NCBI GenBank assembly: GCA_002189035.1
Contig: NEEC01000013.1
Location: 868,001-932,000 of the forward strand
Direction of reading: 5' to 3'
Source: Utricularia gibba
Taxonomy: Eukaryota > Plantae > Magnoliophyta
DNA length: 64,000 nt
This document shows, one piece after another, positions 38,286-50,846 of this stretch. The notes under the pieces are model-generated. The model made no database searches, had not been told where the DNA came from, and saw only the letters and a program-made list of their open reading frames with translations. Every line of letters starts with the position of its first letter. Within the stretch, counting starts at the first letter, position 1. A program made the translations under genes and the position numbers.

Positions 38286-41200
38286 ATGCAGAAACGCGGT
38301 AGAATTACTGATGATTTTAGTGATGATTATAACAACGGAGAAATCAATCCTCGTGAACAGTCATTGACTGAGGATGTGGGTGTGGATGGGACTTTTCATG
38401 AGCCACATATTGGAATGGAATTTGATTCCGAGGATACAGCAAGGATGTTTTATGAACACTACGCTAGGAACACAGGGTTTCGTATTCGCGAAAATGTCAA
38501 ACCTGCAAGATCTGATTCGACGTCAATCTTCCGGGAACTCGTATGCACAAGGAGTGGATCATCGAAAAGGGGGCCTCATGTGAAGCTGCAGTTGTGATTG
38601 AGTTGGTTAGTCAAAACAAATGGGTAGTAACAAAGTTTGTGAAGGATCATACCCACGCCATCAGTCATTGTAAGACTCCAAAGTTGAAGCATAGGAAACG
38701 CTCTGCTACAACGACGAAGTCTGTGGTTGAGGCTATCCCATCCATGGACTTGGTACCTAGTGGTATGATGTGTGTGTCTTTGGTTGGTAACAGTCTTCCA
38801 GAAGAAATGACGCATGTGGGAAGCAATTTTTCATCTTCAGGGTATACCTTTAAGAAGATGGGTTCTTCAGGTTATCTTCCAGGGTATTGCACCCCAGAAA
38901 GAACTTTCGGCAAGGATGCCCAAAATCTATTAGAATATTTCAAAAAGATGCAGGCTGAAAACCCTGGGTTCTACTATGCAATACAACTTGATGAAGAAAA
39001 CCGCATGGCTAATGCATTTTGGTCGGATTCTAGATCAAGGACAGCTTACCGTCATTTTGGGGACGCTGTTACTATGGATACATTGTACAGAGTCAATCAG
39101 TATAGAGTACCATTTGCTCCATTCATGGGGGTGAATAATCATGGCCATTTAATTTTATTTGGTTGTGCTCTACTTCTAGATGAATCTCAGTCTACATTTG
39201 TGTGGTTGTTTAAGACTTTTCTAGCTGCAATGAATGGCAAAGCCCCTGTCTCCATAACCACTGATCAGGACCGAGTAATAAAGGCTGCAGTTGCACATGT
39301 GTTTCCTAATGCCCGGCATTGTATAAACAAGTGGCACGTACTCAGAGAAGGTCAAGAAAGACTGTCTCAGCTCTGTCGAGCGCATCCTAATTTTCAGGCG
39401 GACCTTGATAATTGTGTTAACAAGGCTGAGACTGTTGAGGAGTTTGAATCTTCATGGGGCTCACTTGTTGTCAAATACGCACTGCAAAGAAATGAATGGC
39501 TTCAGTCGATATATGATGCCCGGCAACAATGGGTGCCTGTTTACTTTCGGGACTCCTTTTTTGCTGCCATTTTCTCTAGCTATGGACGCGGGAGCTCATT
39601 TTTTGATGGCTATGTTAATCAGCAAACTACATTACCAATGTTCTTTAGACAGTATGAAAGAGCTTTAGATAATTCTTTTCATAGGGAAGTCAAGGCCGAT
39701 TTAGATACGCTGTGCACAGCACCGGTGCTGAGGACGCCTTCCCCAATGGAGAAACAGGCTGCTACTGTGTATACGAAGAGTGTATTTTCTAAATTCCAAG
39801 AAGAGTTGGTTGAGACCTTTGCATATACTGCAAATAGAGTGCATGGGAATGAGCATAACAGCACTTACAGGGTTGCTAAGTTTGAGGATGATCGAAAATC
39901 ATATTGTGTATCAGTAAATGTTGATGGGATGAAAGCAAATTGCAGCTGTAAGATGTTCGAGTATTGTGGTATTCTATGTAGACATGTCTTGACGGTGTTT
40001 ATGGTTACCAACATACTTACTTTGCCATCCCACTATTTTTTGAAACGGTGGACCAGAAATGCGAAAGGCATAGCTGAGGATCCTGATGGAAATGAGGTGG
40101 GAGGACAGGCAACTTTTACAACGAGATACAATAGTTTGTGCAAGGAGGCCATCATGTTTGCCGAGGAAGCGGCTACCTCATCAGAAACATACTGTGCTGC
40201 ACTCTCAGTTCTTAGAGAAGGAAGAAAGAAGGTTGATGGTGTTAAAAAAAGTCTAAAAGTTGCAACTTCTCCCTCGCTGGTTACTGGAGTTGCCTTCGAT
40301 GATCAGAGAACAAATGCTGGGCTTCCGGATTTGGCACCATCATTGTGGCCAAGGCAAGATGAAATTTTGCAGCGTTTTAATCTTAATCATGCTGGTGTAC
40401 CTTGCCAACCCATTTCAAATCCTAACGCTCTGCATATCTCACCAGTTTCTCTTAGCCAAGTTCGTGCTCCATCGAATGAAATGGTACTGGAACCCTCCAT
40501 TAAATATCTATGAAGATGGATCTCCAGTCCCAGAAAGAAAACTACTCACATTGTCTTTTGTGGTTTTATCTTCAATGCAAGATGGTTCTTCCCTGTCTCA
40601 AGTCGATGACGTGGATGATGGAGAATAAGAACTCGAACACAGCCACAACTCTAGCTTTAATCAGCCTGAAGGTACGTCCAAGTTTTAAAATAAACTTGGT
40701 AGTTTACGGTATGAACATGGCATTTTGGGTTTTATCAAAAATTGAAAAGCAGGCGTAAGCATGATAGATTTTGCCACATTTTTCTCAGATACTCTCCGAC
40801 TGAAAAGAGAGCCTTTTAATGTTATTCTCGTCCATTTCGAAGAACGTATAGTGTGTCCCTTGATCTTCTATAAACACATCAGTTTTCTGGATCATTCCCA
40901 GTAGCCCTGATTTCTCCACAAGCGCTGAAACCTACATTTATCTGCTGCTCATAGTGCTTCTCATTTGATGCCTTTTCAGTTACAAGATTCTGGCAGGACT
41001 CCAGTGGCCGAATCATGTGTAAAATTTTCAGTGTCAAGAGTTACTTTAGAGCCCATGTTGAAGTCCATGGCACACATTATTGACCAACTCTCTACATCTA
41101 CTAATAAGGTGGCTGTCATCAATCTGAAGGTTTGCCTTCCACAATACAATGATCCATTCATTCGTCACTTTTTCCCTTGTTTATTGTTATCCGTTGCTTG

Positions 41201-41655: not shown

Positions 41656-42397
41656 TCTTGCAAACAACAACGAAAAAAGGTAATGCATCCCTGCATCAGG
41701 ATGACCGAGTCGAGTCGGTTTGATCATGCCCTTCTTACAGACCCGATCTCGGCTTCTTGATCTTCAAGAGGGCAATCACTCAGCTTCAGGCTGGCTGTGA
41801 ATATATGTAGTTTGCTCTGTAGGAAACAGTGATGCTTCTAAGGTACAGAATGCAAATAGAGTGTTCCTGTCAAAATTCATGAGCAAGCTTTTCTTTGCTA
41901 GCTTATTTTTAAACTGATGAGACCATACAGCCGCCATCCTCCCTCTCAAACAGGTACCATGACATCAGTTTAACTTGTAAAACATGCCAAAAATTAAGCT
42001 AAATACTATTGCTGACACTTACAATGGGGTCTCATTTCAAAACATTTTTCTCATACTCCGCAGGAGAGACCACAGTCCTGCGTGTGCTTCAACTCTTGCG
42101 TCTACTAGTTCAGAGACAAAATCAAGAAATTCCATCAGATTACACAATGGGATCTCCATCCAGACGATTGTGCCCCAAGTTTTGCCATGAAATCCATGTT
42201 TTACGAGATCCAAGAGAGGCTAATTAGGAAAGCTTTTAGATGATTATTAGTTGATACAGCTGAAGGAATGATGTTTAGCAGACCCCACCGGACTAAGAAA
42301 TACGTCCCGGATACAACTCGCAAACTATCCGGATGGGATGGTCCCTTCTCCCCCTCAGTATATACCTTCTTCCAAGAGCCATTCTACAAACTTCATT

Positions 42398-45300
42398 CTA
42401 CAAGCTTCTGTAATCAATGACTGACTTCATCATCTGGTGCATCCAGGTCGTTGTAGCTGCGATTGGATAGGATTCCTCGTTAAGTTTTCAGTAAGAGCCG
42501 TGTTCCCTCAAGAAGAGGTTAGAATGAAAAGATTTGAGGACCGTTTTCAGATAAGCTTAAGCATTAAGCACAGAGCTCTGACCTCCGCAAACGGCGAGGA
42601 TCTTGTCTGAGTGCAGGGGGCATGGCAATTATGGGAGCAGGCCTACCTATCTGTGGACCTGATCTCCCCTTTCTGCCTCCTTCGAAAGGGGAAGGCCCGC
42701 CTTGTTCTCTCAACATTTGCATAGCAATTTCAGGAGGGGCTGGGACGAAAGGGCCTAATGGACTGAAACACATGGCCGGCAATAAAACAAAATCAAGTCA
42801 CATCTTGGACGACAGGGGAGAAGCCAAAGTCAAGAAAAGAGATATTCACATACCCAGCACCCGGGACAGGCATTAGCACAGGGGGCGGCATATCTAATGA
42901 GAAAGCAGCTACAGGCATACTCTGTCCACCAAAGGAGTCGTATAATGCCTCATCTGGATTATTCTCTGCAGATACATCGCCAGGCAGGTTGTTGTCAGAC
43001 CTATGAAACCGTTCACTACCATTGATGCGGTTGTCATATTCTTGGCGATTTCCCCTGTCATCCTTGATTCTCCCTTCTAAGCCAGGCCTGCGTCTTTGCA
43101 GCCTATCTCTCTGTGGGGGGCACGCATGCAGAATTACATGGAAATGTGATGTGCCTTCGAGAATAACAATACGCAAGTGAAAGTCCTTACCGAAGGAGGG
43201 AGCGTAGCAGGCTTCCCTCCAGGTGCATTCTCATCACTGCAAATGTGAGATAGTTACCAAATGCTCCTGAAACTGGCAAAAGGAATGAACATATATCACT
43301 CACTTCATGTAGCTTTCGAAATACAACTCTTCACGCACTTTAGATATCAATTCCATGACAAGTTCAGGATGTTTCAACTTTAAGTGCTTATGAACAAATT
43401 CAGCAGCATGAAAGAGCTTAGTACAGCCTTTTGCTCCACACCCGTACTTCCATCTATATTTTTCATCCCTAATTTTGCGAACATAGGGATCCAGTGCTTC
43501 CGTAGTTGTGTCTATCTTTTCTTTTGCTGTCATTACTTCAAGGGGGTTCAGGCGATTTAGCCTCTCATGCCAACAGAAATCTAGTTTCTTCTCCATTCCA
43601 TCACCATCAACATTTGTTTCAGCAGTTTTCTCATCTCCCCGAACATCGTAAACCTCTGGCTTCACTTGACTCAGAGAGACCGTAATAATCAATTCCATGT
43701 ATACGCCAGAGATAAGTCAGCAACGCAAAAGCTCAACTCCTTCAAGACCTTTGATGCCTTGGACAATTATCACCGGACCACTTGAGTTTCTGTGTAACTT
43801 ATCTCTGCTCAATCTACTATTGTCACCTTGCAGCAGAATATTATCCTCAATTCCTTTTTCTGAATCAAGCTTCCTAACGAGAGACAAGGCCCGTCCAACA
43901 TCAATCTGGATTCTTCTGGACTCGGAAAAAATTTGATGGGCCTTTGGGGCAGAGAAATGGTCAGAATTTTTTGCACCATAACGACCAGGCCGCCTTCGTT
44001 TGCCACCAACATCAGCTTCATCATCAGAATTAGGCTCAGATTGCCGCCCAGTTTTACTTGATGGCGTATACGCTGGACCACTAATTAATCAAGGGAACTT
44101 CGCTAATCAACAACCATGAGTCATTGTAATAGAAAAACACACTGAAGCCCTATGTACTTGGGGCGTAGGCATAGCGCTTACGTGTCCAAGGTTCCATTCT
44201 GCAGTTCAACTTGAAAATCTTTCGCCAACTTCTTTGAAAGTTCATTCCTCCTGCAAATTTCTGGTCAAATACGTACTTAGGAGAAGATGAAGGAATAATA
44301 AGCATGAAGTGTGATATAATCATACCGTTCTATAACAGCTAGCAGGTTTGTCGGATGATATTTGTCTTTTAGCCTGGAAGACGACAGCTAATATTAGACA
44401 AGAAAGTGTCATTAAAGCGGGCAGTAAGAAGATTGAGAAACAGCCAAATATACCATTCCTCATCTTTATGTGCACTAAAATAATGTCTTTTCTGAGTAGA
44501 TATATACGAACTCCTGTACTCTTGATATCTGCTCTAAAAAATAAATCAGAAACTGAAGAAAGAAGCATCTAAGACCTTTTGAACACAAGGTACTCCAGGT
44601 GTACCTTTTTTCCGCTTCTGAAGGTAAAATATCATCTTCTAACTCTTGAATGAACTGCTTATAAGACATCATTCCTTCACTGGGAAAAAACAAACCCACA
44701 AATTGCATCAGCAATGAAACTTCAGAGAAAATACAGTCTGAAGCTCACGTAAAACCCACCCCATGGAAAAACAGCATATTAAAAAGAAATACGCGGAACA
44801 CATCTCTCAACAAAACAAAGGCACAACGCCGAAAATCAAATCTTAATCAGGAATAGCAAGGACATCCAGATGCACTAACAACAGCCGGCTAAAGAGACTA
44901 CCGTTGAGCTCCTCTGACATTGAAAACATCATTAAATCCACCTTGATCAGAATCCCAATCTGCAGAAGTAGACAAGATTTTCTAATTAAAGGACAAGATC
45001 AAGAATATAACTTGCACAACTATTACTTACATGGGAAAAATACCGTGAACGTTGAAAGATAAGTAATTCAGCACACAGAACAAACACTAAAGTTCAAAGG
45101 CCGACCGCCAAGTTGTACGAAAGGGCCAATGCTTAATAATATGAGAATGAAGATTCTACCAGATGATAAACCAGGATATCCACGGCCTAACCGACCATGT
45201 AACCTGTTATCAGGGTAGCCAATTGTGGGGTTAATTTGAGAAATGTCCATCTATCTCCACTGAAATTTTATATATGGACATCTCTTAAAAACTCTTTGTA

Positions 45301-47533
45301 AATTGGCCATCTCGAAAATGACCTATTAAAAGAAAATCATTTTTCATTCAAATAGTCAGTGTATATACATGGTATATTGAATTTTGTTTAATTATCTATT
45401 TTCAAAAAAAACCTAATTTTGTTGATTAATATATGTAATTATATAGTATTGTATATAATAGTATAAAATATGCAACAATAACAAATGAATTATTAAATAA
45501 TTTACAAATACAAAAAATAATAACACTCTATTACAATTAATTATATATAAACATTTGTATAATTAAATTATTAGTGTAAATAATCGCGTAATTAAATTAT
45601 ACAATATATATACATAATTTACCCATCAAAGATGAAATCCATTTTTTATATAAAATAAATGGTCCATAAAAAAATCGAGGCATTTTTCACCAATTTTGGT
45701 TTTCGAATTAACTGTATCCCACATATTTCCGGAAATGCAGTAATCCGAAAGAGTTATGCAATATCTTCATTCCGCACTCTTGAAGAATCACTATAATTCG
45801 GAAGAGTTTTACAGTTTCAATATAGTAAGGAAAATATCACCAATCAAGCATTCCTTCGATTAAGACCATAGTTAATACAAGAAAACCATGTAAATATTTG
45901 CTTCAAACAAAATCATGAGGCTAGACATATAGGTTTACACACAAGGAAAAAGAAGAGCAGATCTTTACATACAAGACAACACTTCAAGAGTTGAATGTGC
46001 CCCTGAAATAATTCAGATTCCAATTCAAGTAGTTTATCCTGAAGCACAAGGATCACATTCTAGGAGTTGAGGAAGTAGAAATGGAAAAGAAAAAAAGTGG
46101 TAGAATGATGGTTGATATGTGGTTTTCATGTTGCACTTTTGCGTGTATCAAGTATTAGAAGTGACTAATGTTTGTGATATTTGCACTCGATGATTTTGTT
46201 TGAAGCAAACATTTACGTGGTTTTCTTGTATTAACTATGGTCTTAATCGAAGGAATGCTTGATTGGTGATATTTTCCTTACTATATTGAAACTGTAAAAC
46301 TCTTCCGAATTATAGTGATTCCTCAAGAGTGCGGAATGGAGATACTGCATAACTCTTTCGGATTACTGCATTTCCGGAAATGTGTGAGATACAGTTAATT
46401 CGAAAACCAAAATTGGTGAAAAATGCCTCGATTTTTTTCTGGACCATTTATTTTATATAAAAAATGGATTTCATCTTTGATGTGTAAATTATGTATATAT
46501 ATTATATAATTTAATTACGTGATTATTTATACTAATAATTTAATTATACAAATATTTATATATAATTAACTGTAATAGAGTGTTATTATTTTTTGTATTT
46601 GTAAATTATTTAATAATTCATTTGTTATTGTTGCATATTTTATACTATTATATACAATACTATATAATTACATATATTAATCAACGAAATTAGGTTTTTT
46701 TGAAAATATACAATTAAACAAAATTCAATATACCATGTATATACACTGACTATTTGAATGAAAAATGATTTTCTTTTAATAGGTCATTTTCGAGATGGCC
46801 AATTTTGCAAAGAGTTTTTGAGAGATAGCCATGTCTCAAATTTCAGTGGAGATATATGGACATTTATCAAATTGACCTGCCAATTGTGCCCCCCATTTCA
46901 CGCTCATAACCCGCAGAATAATCAAACGGAATCCTGAACCCATGAAATGAGCAAGAAGCTTGATTAATTGTTTACTATGTAAAAAACGATTATCACATTG
47001 ACTGCATAACATAATCTTAACATGGCTATGCTAAAAAACAGACAAACCACCAATTACATGGAAAATAAGCGAAACAAGGAGTTCACCTTAGCTCCCCCAG
47101 GGCCATATCCTCCTCTAGGGCTCCCTCTCCTTCCATTATAAGCGTCGTCCTTCCTACGCTTATAGCCAGGAAGTGGTGGAGATCTTCTAGCTGGAGAATG
47201 GGGGCGTCGATCCCGATAAGGTGGCGGAGGCGGACTCGGACTCATCCTACTCCGCTTATGACAATTCCTCTCCCGCGGCGGTGGGGGTGGAGATGATCGA
47301 TTCCGTTCATATTGTTCTCTCCGCAGTGGCCGTTCATCACGTCGGTCTCGAGAATCCCGAATTCCTCTTCGCGGAGGCAGAGGTGGAGGTGGCGGCGAAG
47401 ATGCAGTATCGTGCCCAGCCTCACTAGCTGTAGTTTCCGGCTGCTTCTCTTCGTTAATGGGATCCGCCTCGTTCCCAGCATCGCGGTTTACGCTGGAATT
47501 TTCTTCAGCACGGTCCAAAACTTCCGCCATCAA
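42398..47533 (-). pseudogene. SE: SERRATE (SE/ARS2) homolog disrupted by a MULE in exon 2 and several small indels
   Basis: All exons traceable with GT-AG introns: MAEVLD..RGSPRGGYGP; FDYSAGYEREMGG|TIGYPDNRLHGR; DWDSDQGG; MMSYKQFIQELEDDILPSEAEKR; YQEY..TQKR..HKDEEW; LKDKYHPTNL; KLDSEKGIEDN; KIRDEKYRWKYGCGAKGCTKLFHAAEFVHKHLKLKH (zinc finger); PVPGAG|PLGPFVPAPPE; RQDPRRLRS|YNDLDAP..VIDYRSL*. Confidence 0.9.
45228..46878. mobile_element. Non-autonomous Mutator-like foldback element (1,651 bp) with ~690-bp TIRs and 10-bp TSD
   Basis: Arms 45228-~45919 and ~46186-46878 are reverse complements (~95% by eye, with a ~90-nt perfect stretch) around a 266-bp spacer. GCCAATTGTG is duplicated exactly at 45218-45227 and 46879-46888. 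A 9-11 bp TSD with long TIRs is diagnostic of MULEs. Confidence 0.95.
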
Positions 47534-47564
47534 CGAGTCAGAATTTCGTCAGTTTCCAAAATCC

Positions 47565-48100
47565 AAACCCTAATCTACTTCTCCAACTGCGAGCAGAGAC
47601 TTCAAAGTTGGGGTGGTCTTCAGCAAACTACGTAGCAAATGACATAAACACTCCTACTGGAATTCCTTTTTTTTCTGAAGAAGAAGAGAGATCCCCTGAA
47701 TTGCACAGAGCAGCTGCGAACAAATCGAACCCTGCTGCCGGATTCCGATCAGCACTCCCGCAAGAGAAGTTCCCATGCCGGGAGTAGGATTCGATTTTCT
47801 TTCAGTTAATTTATAGGAGGAAAAAAAATAAGCGTGCCACGACATACAAATTGAGAATAAATTCTCACACGATGCCAAGGTTTTACGTGTGAGCCCAATC
47901 CCAATATTTGAGCCCCGCCCACCCGAATTATTGGTCCGTTGGGCTGGGTCTGGGACACGGACCTTAAGAGAAGCTCCACCACAAGCCCATTTGATATCTA
48001 TTATTTTGTATAAATAGTTTATAAAAATGAATATAATATTTTGCGTTGTTTTGGGTTCCAGTAACCGGTAGGCCATAGCCGGTGACATGTGGGCCCAGCC
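47565..48100. promoter_or_regulatory. SE upstream region: telo-box (AAACCCTAA, 47565-47573) and cluster of site II (TGGGCY/RGCCCA) motifs at ~47890-48100
   Basis: Motifs are directly visible. The telo-box plus site II combination is typical of plant RNA-processing and translation housekeeping promoters. Confidence 0.55.
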
Positions 48101-49133: not shown

Positions 49134-50846
49134 TTAGTACCAGATCGATGATATGTCTTGTTGCTTTGATGAGTTCTCGCTTGCTGCTCCTGAGAAGTTG
49201 TCGGGGTAATCTATGGAGAAGATGTTCGATGGGGAATCGAACATTAGCCAGACACTGTCTGAAGCCGGGCTCGAGTTGAAGGGTTGAGGAATGGCCCTGA
49301 ATTCTGCAAAAATGTTGGCATCCAGCATCAATGGCTGGCTTCCGAGGTATTCTTGAGGCCTGTATGAAGGGTTGCCACCATTTGAACCATGGGATTTTTG
49401 AACTTCTCTGTCATAGAGAGCCATAAGATTGCTGATCATCCTCTGTTCATCTTCCGGAACTCCGAGGCCGGAGAGATCGAAGGAAGCCGGAGGTGGATTC
49501 GAAGGCATGGACTGAGGAAAAACTACTGGCTTCACATCCGCAATGTCAAAACCTGATGCATCAAAGTCAGATATACGCTTGAGTGGACAAGAGAGCTGAT
49601 GCTTGTCTCTTGAAGTTTTATCTTGAAATCTGAGGTGAGCTTCGCTATGGGGACGCCGGGAATACTGGCATGTGGAGATCTCCTTCTCCACCATCTCATT
49701 GTTTCTGACTTTCCTTTTCCGGGAGAAGTCCAAGTTGGTGATCACTTCCTCCTTGATGACATGCGCCTGCTGTGTCACTTGAAAGTTATCCATCCCAAGA
49801 TTCATTAAACCCATCGAAGTTGGTTTTTGCTCGTGCACCTCGAAGTTAGAATCAATGTGCGCCCCATCAATATCGTACTCGCTGCAATCGTTCATTGGAA
49901 ATGCACTGCCACAAGGTGAAGAAGACAGCGGGGGCTGGCAGTGATCAGGGAAGAGATCGCGGGCCATAGCTTCCTCCTGGCTGATGATATTCAGCCAAGT
50001 TGCGCTTTCCTTTGCTGTCATCTTGTCCTGTAAACACTTCGACTGCCTCACGAGCTTCCGGATCTTCGAAATGTTGGGCGACATGTGCTTGATAACTGCT
50101 GTCAAAACACCAACCTTCCACGCCTTCTTAAGATCATGAGGCTTCTTGTAAGGAGGGCGTTGATCCCTCTGTAACCCCAACTGAGGCCACCAGTCTTCGT
50201 TTCCAGTCGGCCACCACGGAGGGGGAACCCCTTTCTCTAAGGGAAACCTTCGCTGAGGTGGATCACAATGCTGCATCAGAGCTGACAACAGCGAGCCAAG
50301 AGTCGTATCCTGGAGCTCCTGCAACGTATGTGGTGTAGGACCAGCAACCTTGGAGCCATGGCTCTTCCCTGGAACTGCGTTATCTGCTTGGTATTTGGCT
50401 ATCGCCGCCGGACCATTCCGATCGAATCTCACCTTCTCCTTCCACCACTCCCTCAGATTATCAGATGCCCCACTCACCGGCTTCCCGTTCTCAGGAATGA
50501 TCCCATAAACAAAGCCTTGAGCCTTGCAAACTTCCATCATCTTCAACATGTACTTCAGGATCCCATCTTGTGCCCTCGACATCTTCTTCCTCCTCGACTG
50601 CTCTTCTGATTGCCGTTGCATCGGAGTATCCAAACCTTGCTTCCCCTTGCTCATTTCCTTCAACCTTTTTAGCCTCATTTTGTCCCTCCACACCCTCCTC
50701 TCAAGCTCGTCAACATCAATCTCCTCATCTGTAAAGTCATCCTCCGGCTCCGTATATCCAGGGGGGGAAGCATCCACCTCCTTCACTGGAACAGAAGCAA
50801 GGAAATCAAAATCTCCACAAAGCCCCATGTTGTCAAACATCAGCAT
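49134..50846 (-). CDS. EIL1: Ethylene-insensitive 3-like transcription factor, single-exon CDS, 570 aa, intact
   Basis: [123 protein letters not shown]-terminal SSIWY. A 5'UTR intron acceptor TTCTTACAG|G lies at ~50905. EIN3 versus EIL1 cannot be fixed from sequence alone; the symbol was chosen from recalled synteny. Confidence 0.93.

Follow-up and report, generated by a model that had tools for sequence, protein, structure and literature searches.

The window that we analysed is a 64,000-nucleotide stretch of the Utricularia gibba genome (positions 868,001 to 932,000 of contig NEEC01000013.1). Its minus strand contains a homologue of SERRATE/ARS2, a gene of microRNA processing, and exon 2 of this gene is interrupted by a foldback DNA transposon that is flanked by a 10-bp target-site duplication (Table 1). 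Because tblastn with two SERRATE representatives overlooked small exons and fused frames, we used instead a gene model that was built by hand with GT..AG introns and checked against RNA joints. The conceptual translation (with X at each break in the frame) is colinear over its full length with eight Lamiales SERRATE proteins, from MAEV... to ...DLDAPDDEV; its last 7 residues are lost by frameshift. The architecture that we compared comprises an N-terminal RS/Pro-rich region, a DUF3546 region (placed by alignment rather than by a domain scan), ARS2, and a C-terminal ...VIDYRSL. The ARS2 domain with its C2H2 zinc finger was recognized by Pfam (PF04959, E = 8.1e-25), and the protein matched the core structure of Arabidopsis SERRATE (PDB 3AX1, E = 4.6e-46). 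The ARS2/zinc-finger region is 68–75% identical to Arabidopsis and Lamiales SERRATE, and the best identity for the window's protein among the database matches listed is ~70% (Sesamum indicum). Unlike the Lamiales proteins, the window's copy has five frame breaks, a 3-amino-acid deletion, and many substitutions at conserved positions.

Table 1. Features of the interrupted SERRATE gene and of the foldback element, in coordinates of the window.
Feature	Position	Strand	Details
SERRATE exon 1	47087..47530	-	ATG at 47530
Exon 2, upstream of the insertion	46879..46933	-	...IPFDYSAGYEREMGGTIG
Exon 2, downstream of the insertion	45160..45217	-	YPDNRLHGRLGRGYPGLSS; donor at 45159
Exons 3-7	44182..44959 (44959-44902, 44679-44605, 44528-44454, 44373-44326, 44250-44182)	-	GT..AG introns throughout
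Exon 8, middle and ARS2/zinc-finger region	43304..44080	-	contains two frameshifting deletions
Exons 9-12	42395..43236 (43236-43191, 43110-42854, 42762-42583, 42456-about 42395)	-	C-terminus included
Target-site duplication, copy nearer the gene's 5' end	46879..46888	.	GCCAATTGTG repeated
Target-site duplication, copy nearer the gene's 3' end	45218..45227	.	GCCAATTGTG; single copy in the X1 empty-site contig
Non-autonomous foldback (long-TIR) DNA transposon	45228..46878	.	1651 bp, 27% GC
Left inverted arm	45228..45916	+	~690 bp
Loop separating the arms	45917..46189	.	~273 bp
Right inverted arm	46190..46878	-	~690 bp

Some choices in this model concern splice sites. A stop after exon 7 (LDTEVPLIN*) was considered as a sixth lesion and dropped; it comes from an alternative acceptor at 44102, which is used in a contig from X1, an RNA sample that is different from the window's and carries the same species label. 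The acceptor at 44080 yields the conserved GTLDTGPAY, and a contig from another RNA run (X2) ends there. Lengthening exon 1 to a donor at 47054, which would save the frame, was also dropped, because exon 1 is spliced at the AAG|GT donor in the X1 transcript. X1 also uses an alternative donor for exon 2, at 45030.

On the minus strand, the reading frame of exon 2 runs through ...FDYSAGYEREMGG TIG and continues into the element as AGG TCA ATT TGA, so that read-through is terminated after three codons of the element. If the element and one copy of the duplication are taken out, the frame becomes ...EMGGTIGYPDNRLHGRLGR, which aligns to EMGGRPGYPDERPHGR of Lamiales SERRATE proteins. The two copies of the duplication match at 10/10 positions. 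A first-pass annotation of this DNA had described a foldback element with a coding-sequence duplication in exon 2 of SERRATE, along with the restored frame and the early stop, and our analysis bears out all of this.

The insertion site exists in both empty and filled forms, as comparison of assembled reads revealed. An RNA contig from X1 (record 7) connects 45217 to 46879 and skips 1661 nt, which corresponds to the element plus one copy of the duplication. At this joint, 10 letters are compatible with either side, and GT..AG is unavailable there. Intron 1 has already been spliced from the same contig. This spliced contig thus crosses the site with one copy of the duplication and no element. 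It follows that the flanks are exonic and that the insertion is a derived, variable state. The filled site is present in contigs built from short reads of two DNA runs, which are independent and belong to different studies: record 22 of X8 spans 46846–47317, across the right junction, and record 27 of X9 spans 44649–45337, across the left junction.

The element has no open reading frame of more than 47 amino acids. Within the 64-kb window, its terminal 36 nt are present at its two ends only (chance expectation 0), and a search of the window for further copies of its termini found none. A MULE-domain open reading frame lies nearby (38543–40513), and termini matching it are absent from the window. 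Elsewhere in the genome, part of the loop (~45946–46168) recurs with different flanks, as seen in loose ends of the X8 and X9 contigs. In the X9 DNA, depth reaches 140 over the element versus ~40 in its flanks, and the contigs over the element include variants, joints with internal deletions, and loose ends, with no second insertion site readable from them.

The arms of classical foldback (FB) transposons are built from tandem sub-repeats, whereas the arms of this element lack such arrays (TRF gives just one short AT-rich 2-copy array). In its long inverted arms and short loop, the element does resemble the FB transposons of Drosophila and Mutator/foldback families such as Tm1 of nematodes (PMC3169594). 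A duplication of 9–11 bp sets MULEs apart (PMC3310237), and our element resembles the non-autonomous MULEs of plants in having a 10-bp duplication, long TIRs, no coding capacity, and a location within a gene. It differs from them in its foldback form: the arms make up 84% of its length, while the TIRs of MULEs are usually 100–500 bp. Also, although the two arms are ~96% identical overall, the outermost ~80 bp are their least conserved part, at 84% identity only. The first-pass annotation called the element Mutator-like. The lengths of the duplication and of the TIRs fit this label, and they weakly suggest that the element belongs to the Mutator superfamily.

The SERRATE frame in the window is broken not only by the transposon but also by a +1 frameshift in exon 1 and by three deletions: exon 8 lacks ~4 nt at one site and 2 nt at another, and 2 nt are missing near the C-terminus. 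At the end of exon 1, the G-run at 47094–47098 has one more G than X1 (GGGGG vs. GGGG), so that exons 1 and 2 no longer share a frame. In exon 8, ~4 nt are missing at 43724–43725 (ELL[DT]LLTYLW) and 2 nt are missing at 43646/43647 (GLR[H]VRG). The frame that enters from upstream (...GVELL) reaches a TGA three codons past the first of these deletions, and the conserved LLTYLW...GLR between them sits in a different frame. Finally, the 2-nt deletion near 42422 leads to ...DDEVSH*, while homologues end in ...DDEVTVIDYRSL*; the conserved C-terminus is gone.

These lesions recur in other samples. The DNA contigs from X8 and X9 align without gaps at the window's lesion sites. The RNA contigs from X2, which cover 42300–44080 only (the G-run of exon 1 lies outside), are 100% identical to the window over the exon 8 and C-terminal lesions. 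X1 carries an additional GC behind 43646, and its ...EVTVIDYRSL is intact; its contig ends at the site of the ~4-nt deletion. (Differences in X1 were taken from Logan contig tables, not from raw reads.) The other haplotypes have frame-breaking changes of their own. The private indels of X9 fall away from the window's lesions and include a 7-nt deletion at 44477, within exon 5. In X1, 8 nt are missing at 47413, there is an additional T behind 43378 (in the zinc finger), and 43 nt are replaced by 10 nt, with loss of the last acceptor. As no lesion is common to all three haplotypes, the locus may have worked until recently and may still work in some accessions.

Between the window and X1 we counted 15 non-synonymous and 9 synonymous differences, and it is mostly X1 that keeps the conserved residue. 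In a comparison with Lamiales SERRATE proteins, the terminal branch of the window's protein is 0.45 versus a median of 0.087, or five times longer. Both observations point to relaxed constraint on this copy. Core Lamiales have two SERRATE clades. A second SERRATE transcript is present in X1 (record 2, one RNA contig from one run); it is 10% diverged, has a depth of 115, and is properly spliced with an intact C-terminus. A second SERRATE protein from this species is absent among the 240 database proteins listed. As for the window's copy, the RNA from X2 indicates that the 3' half of the gene is transcribed. X2 is the only RNA run that matches the window's haplotype, and its depth is zero across 44110–47700. 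Searching RNA runs with 44400–47600 returned almost nothing, and a search with the whole gene returned runs with only the 3' part.

The first-pass annotation had taken the insertion to be a natural allele of a core microprocessor gene, in other words a single event that knocks out, or renders hypomorphic, an otherwise functional SERRATE. The insertion is indeed real, exonic, and stop-creating, and colinearity with SERRATE extends from end to end of the conceptual protein. But there are at least four more frame-breaking lesions (X8 and X9 DNA support them, and X2 RNA supports those in exon 8 and at the C-terminus), two other haplotypes have private frameshifts, the branch is five-fold longer than the median, and another SERRATE transcript is expressed. 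We consider this explanation very unlikely. It is harder still to believe that the insertion or the frameshifts are artefacts of assembly or polishing. One lesion does lie within a G5 homopolymer, and foldbacks are difficult to assemble, but wherever the contigs of two DNA runs and of one RNA run cover the junctions and lesions, they agree with the window and show no gaps, and neither the exon 8 deletions nor the C-terminal one falls in a homopolymer.

We also considered that the empty-site transcript of X1 might represent another locus of one genome (a homeologue or a recent paralogue) rather than an allele, in which case the insertion would be fixed instead of polymorphic. X1 is 1–3% off the window and has several indels, which is high for alleles. 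However, the X8 and X9 DNA contains neither the X1 indels (depth_with 0) nor the empty joint, their depth over the exons is that of a single contig, all of the X2 RNA contigs are identical to the window, and X9 carries a subset of the X1 SNPs, as expected of an intermediate haplotype. So we view a homeologous origin as unlikely. The insertions of Mu and Ds in maize genes provide a precedent for intronisation: there, transposons are spliced from host exons as new introns. Similarly, a GT in the first bases of our element (GGCAG|GTCAAT, 46878/46877) and a nearby downstream AG at ~45204 (AACAG|G), 15 nt past the second copy of the duplication, might permit in-frame removal with the loss of only YPDN. 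Both sites exist, but no such joint is found in the RNA runs examined (X2, the sole haplotype match, has no depth there), and the remaining frameshifts would block a full-length protein even after splicing; intronisation thus seems quite improbable. There is a somewhat slimmer chance that the near-perfect hairpin of ~670 bp in a Pol II transcript is diced to siRNAs (a young hairpin-RNA/proto-miRNA locus that arose within a copy of a miRNA-machinery gene) or that the element is removed as a new in-frame intron.

Instead, we propose, with a probability of roughly 0.78, that a non-autonomous long-TIR transposon, most likely of the Mutator superfamily, sits in coding exon 2 of a decaying SERRATE paralogue, one of two in this core-Lamiales plant. 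Other lesions accompany the element, so that the insertion counts as one of several in a duplicate that is degenerating. Constraint on this copy would have been relaxed either before the insertion or afterwards. The insertion itself made the 10-bp duplication and introduced the early stop, and any read-through transcript would contain a hairpin of ~670 bp. The same haplotype also has the +1 frameshift in exon 1, the two deletions in exon 8, and the 2-nt deletion at the C-terminus, and this copy cannot encode a full-length SERRATE whether the element is present or absent. The insertion would then mark a stage in the decay of a duplicate that is redundant yet still transcribed. We infer that this copy is redundant with the second paralogue and that the insertion has no phenotype; SERRATE function would presumably come from the other paralogue.

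In Arabidopsis, null alleles of SERRATE are embryo-lethal. A natural knock-out of SERRATE, as first read, would be surprising given this lethality, and our search of the literature on natural transposon insertions in SERRATE, or on SERRATE pseudogenes, found nothing specific. The evidence favours a more ordinary case: SERRATE was duplicated in core Lamiales, one copy is decaying here, and the insertion is among several haplotype-specific lesions. For annotation, the locus is a warning, as gene callers may invent introns that conceal both the transposon and the frameshifts, and may list a second SERRATE gene. The insertion is useful as a clean presence/absence marker. It also provides a dated case of a long-TIR, probably Mutator-type element whose activity was recent enough for samples to differ.

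The gene that hosts the foldback transposon lies on the minus strand and is a copy of SERRATE. An ORF at 43303-43698 matches ARS2 in Pfam (E = 8e-25) and the solved core of Arabidopsis SERRATE, 3AX1 (E = 5e-46), and both HMMER and word-based searches matched plant SERRATE proteins. Among the matches listed, the closest was from Sesamum indicum (~70% over the whole length). Our gene model has 12 exons, with GT..AG at every intron, and RNA joints confirm eight of the introns. On the minus strand, the sequence at the insertion reads ...EMGG TIG and then AGG TCA ATT TGA. With the element and one copy of the direct duplication (GCCAATTGTG) removed, exon 2 reads EMGGTIGYPDNRLHGRLGR, which aligns with EMGGRPGYPDERPHGR in its relatives. 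Directly upstream of the SERRATE copy is an EIN3-like gene (49134-50846, minus strand), an intact ORF of 570 amino acids with an EIN3 DNA-binding domain (E = 4e-130).

Coordinates of the interrupted exon and of the parts of the insertion
Feature	Coordinates	Strand	Remark
exon 2	46933 to 45160	minus	element in between
duplication, first copy	45218-45227		
left inverted arm	45228-45916		
right inverted arm	46190-46878		
duplication, second copy	46879-46888		

We compared Logan contigs from two RNA runs (X1 and X2) and two DNA runs (X8 and X9) with the window over 42300-47700. The X1 contigs diverge from the window by 1–3%. One of them (844 nt) lacks intron 1 and fuses 46879 straight to 45217, which omits 1661 nt: the element and one copy of the duplication. 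Ten letters at this joint fit both sides, and GT..AG is impossible in that range. This contig is a spliced transcript of the empty site, not a transcript from which the element was spliced out. The first-pass annotation had placed the insertion in a coding exon; the empty-site transcript contradicts an ancestral intron here, and the exon reading holds. (In X1, intron 2 has alternative donors at 45159 or 45030, and the longer exon hits a stop, region 44960-45159; besides the conserved acceptor at 44080, exon 8 uses another one, at 44102, which lies 23 nt upstream and yields TAG.)

An X8 contig that barely differs from the window spans the right junction of the element, and an X9 contig (~1–3% diverged) spans the left one, so the insertion occurs in two DNA samples and is no artefact of assembly. 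Neither the empty joint nor the X1 indels appear in X8 or X9, whose depth over the exons is that of a single contig, and X9 has some SNPs in common with X1. The most plausible reading is thus that X1 represents an allele from a different accession, not an additional copy within the same genome; that it is a homeologue seems improbable. The presence of the insertion varies between samples. Where the element is present, it might be removed in frame by splicing (GGCAG|GT ... AACAG|G), with loss of YPDN. The arithmetic is sound, but no RNA supports this, and the sole RNA run of the window's haplotype (X2) has a depth of 0 upstream of 44110, perhaps simply an effect of 3' bias in a run of low depth.

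The element, a non-autonomous cut-and-paste transposon, has two arms separated by a loop of ~273 bp. The arms are ~96% identical, but unevenly so: 97–98% in the inner parts and only 84% in the outermost ~80 bp. The element has a GC content of 27%, no ORF above 47 amino acids, and no tandem sub-repeat arrays. Its gene-sense transcript is predicted to form a hairpin with 672 base pairs between the arms (MFE -1032 kcal/mol). Mutator-like elements typically have long TIRs and are set apart from the remaining DNA transposons by a duplication of 9–11 bp (PMC3310237). This candidate Mutator-like element has both features, with a 10-bp duplication, although its arms exceed the usual TIR length. Its terminal 36 nt do not recur in the 64-kb window (chance expectation 0). 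In the X9 and X8 DNA, raised depth over the element, internal-deletion joints, and loose ends suggest additional copies of the family, or deletion derivatives of it. X9 contigs join 45439-46506, 46003-46070, and 46802-46859, with a few letters replaced at the joints; these are probably deletion derivatives or diverged foldback copies elsewhere in the X9 genome. In the region 45943-46185, X8 and X9 contigs match ~45946-46168 of the loop with unrelated sequence on both sides, so part of the loop is a repeat that also occurs at other places in the genome, with different surroundings. An intact single-exon ORF at 38543-40513 (plus strand, 656 amino acids), with MULE transposase, ZSWIM RNaseH-like, and SWIM domains, may be either a domesticated transposase of the FAR1/FRS type or a Mutator transposase; no foldback termini lie near it.

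Besides the element, the window's copy has four frame breaks. (a) Exon 1 ends in phase 0 with GGC CCT GGG GGA GCT AAG|gt, so exon 2 reads GAT TCC GTT TGA; the window's G-run has 5 G where X1 has 4, and X1 reads in frame as GYGPGELRIPFDYSAGYEREMGG. In exon 8, the frame shifts after GVELL and returns before VRGDEK: (b) ~4 nt are absent at 43724-43725, where relatives carry DT, and (c) 2 nt are absent at 43646/43647, where relatives carry H. The upstream frame reaches TGA at most three codons past the first of these deletions, and a different frame carries the conserved stretch between the two. X1 has GC inserted precisely at the second site. (d) Another 2 nt are absent near 42422, giving DDEVSH* in place of DDEVTVIDYRSL*; both X1 contigs have EVTVIDYRSL* there. 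X8 and X9 contigs span all four sites without gaps, and exon 8 and the 3' end are also represented in X2, whose contigs match the window at 100% identity. The lesions are thus real, and the X2 RNA shows transcription of this broken copy, at minimum between 44080 and the 3' end.

Decay extends beyond the window's haplotype. Exon 5 of X9 carries a private deletion of 7 nt (44477). In X1, 8 nt of exon 1 are missing at 47413, the zinc-finger HLKLKH contains an additional T behind 43378, and 10 nt replace 43 nt across the last acceptor. Among the coding differences listed between X1 and the window, 15 of 24 are non-synonymous and 9 are synonymous; where the residue differs, it is mostly X1 that retains the one conserved in relatives. 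(Two length variants are in-frame or in the UTR: +CGGACT in X9 at 47230, within the Pro/Ser-rich stretch of exon 1, and +(GAA)5 in X1 at 47676, in the 5' leader.) A tree of 37 SERRATE proteins places the conceptual protein of the window inside the core Lamiales, with its exact neighbour uncertain, on a terminal branch of 0.45 (median 0.087).

The same tree has two SERRATE clades in the core Lamiales. Most plant lineages are reported to have one SERRATE copy, and some to have more (PMC7154892). A third kind of contig in X1 (record 2), 1049 nt of RNA with a depth of 115, differs from the window by ~10% in exon 11 (42423-42755), is correctly spliced, and has an intact C-terminus, ending ...DDEVTVIDYRSL*. 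These features are evidence for a second expressed paralogue, and judged by its sequence this is probably the species' other, functional SERRATE.

We found no paper that describes a natural transposon insertion in SERRATE or a SERRATE pseudogene. The first-pass annotation viewed the insertion as a natural insertional allele of a core microprocessor gene. The insertion itself is confirmed, and this interpretation of it is partly supported: the element does interrupt exon 2, but the gene is a decaying duplicate with several other lesions. The insertion truncates the reading frame in exon 2, and with the other lesions present, it adds no further loss of coding capacity. The transposon insertion is one of several lesions in a decaying SERRATE duplicate, which is an ordinary case.
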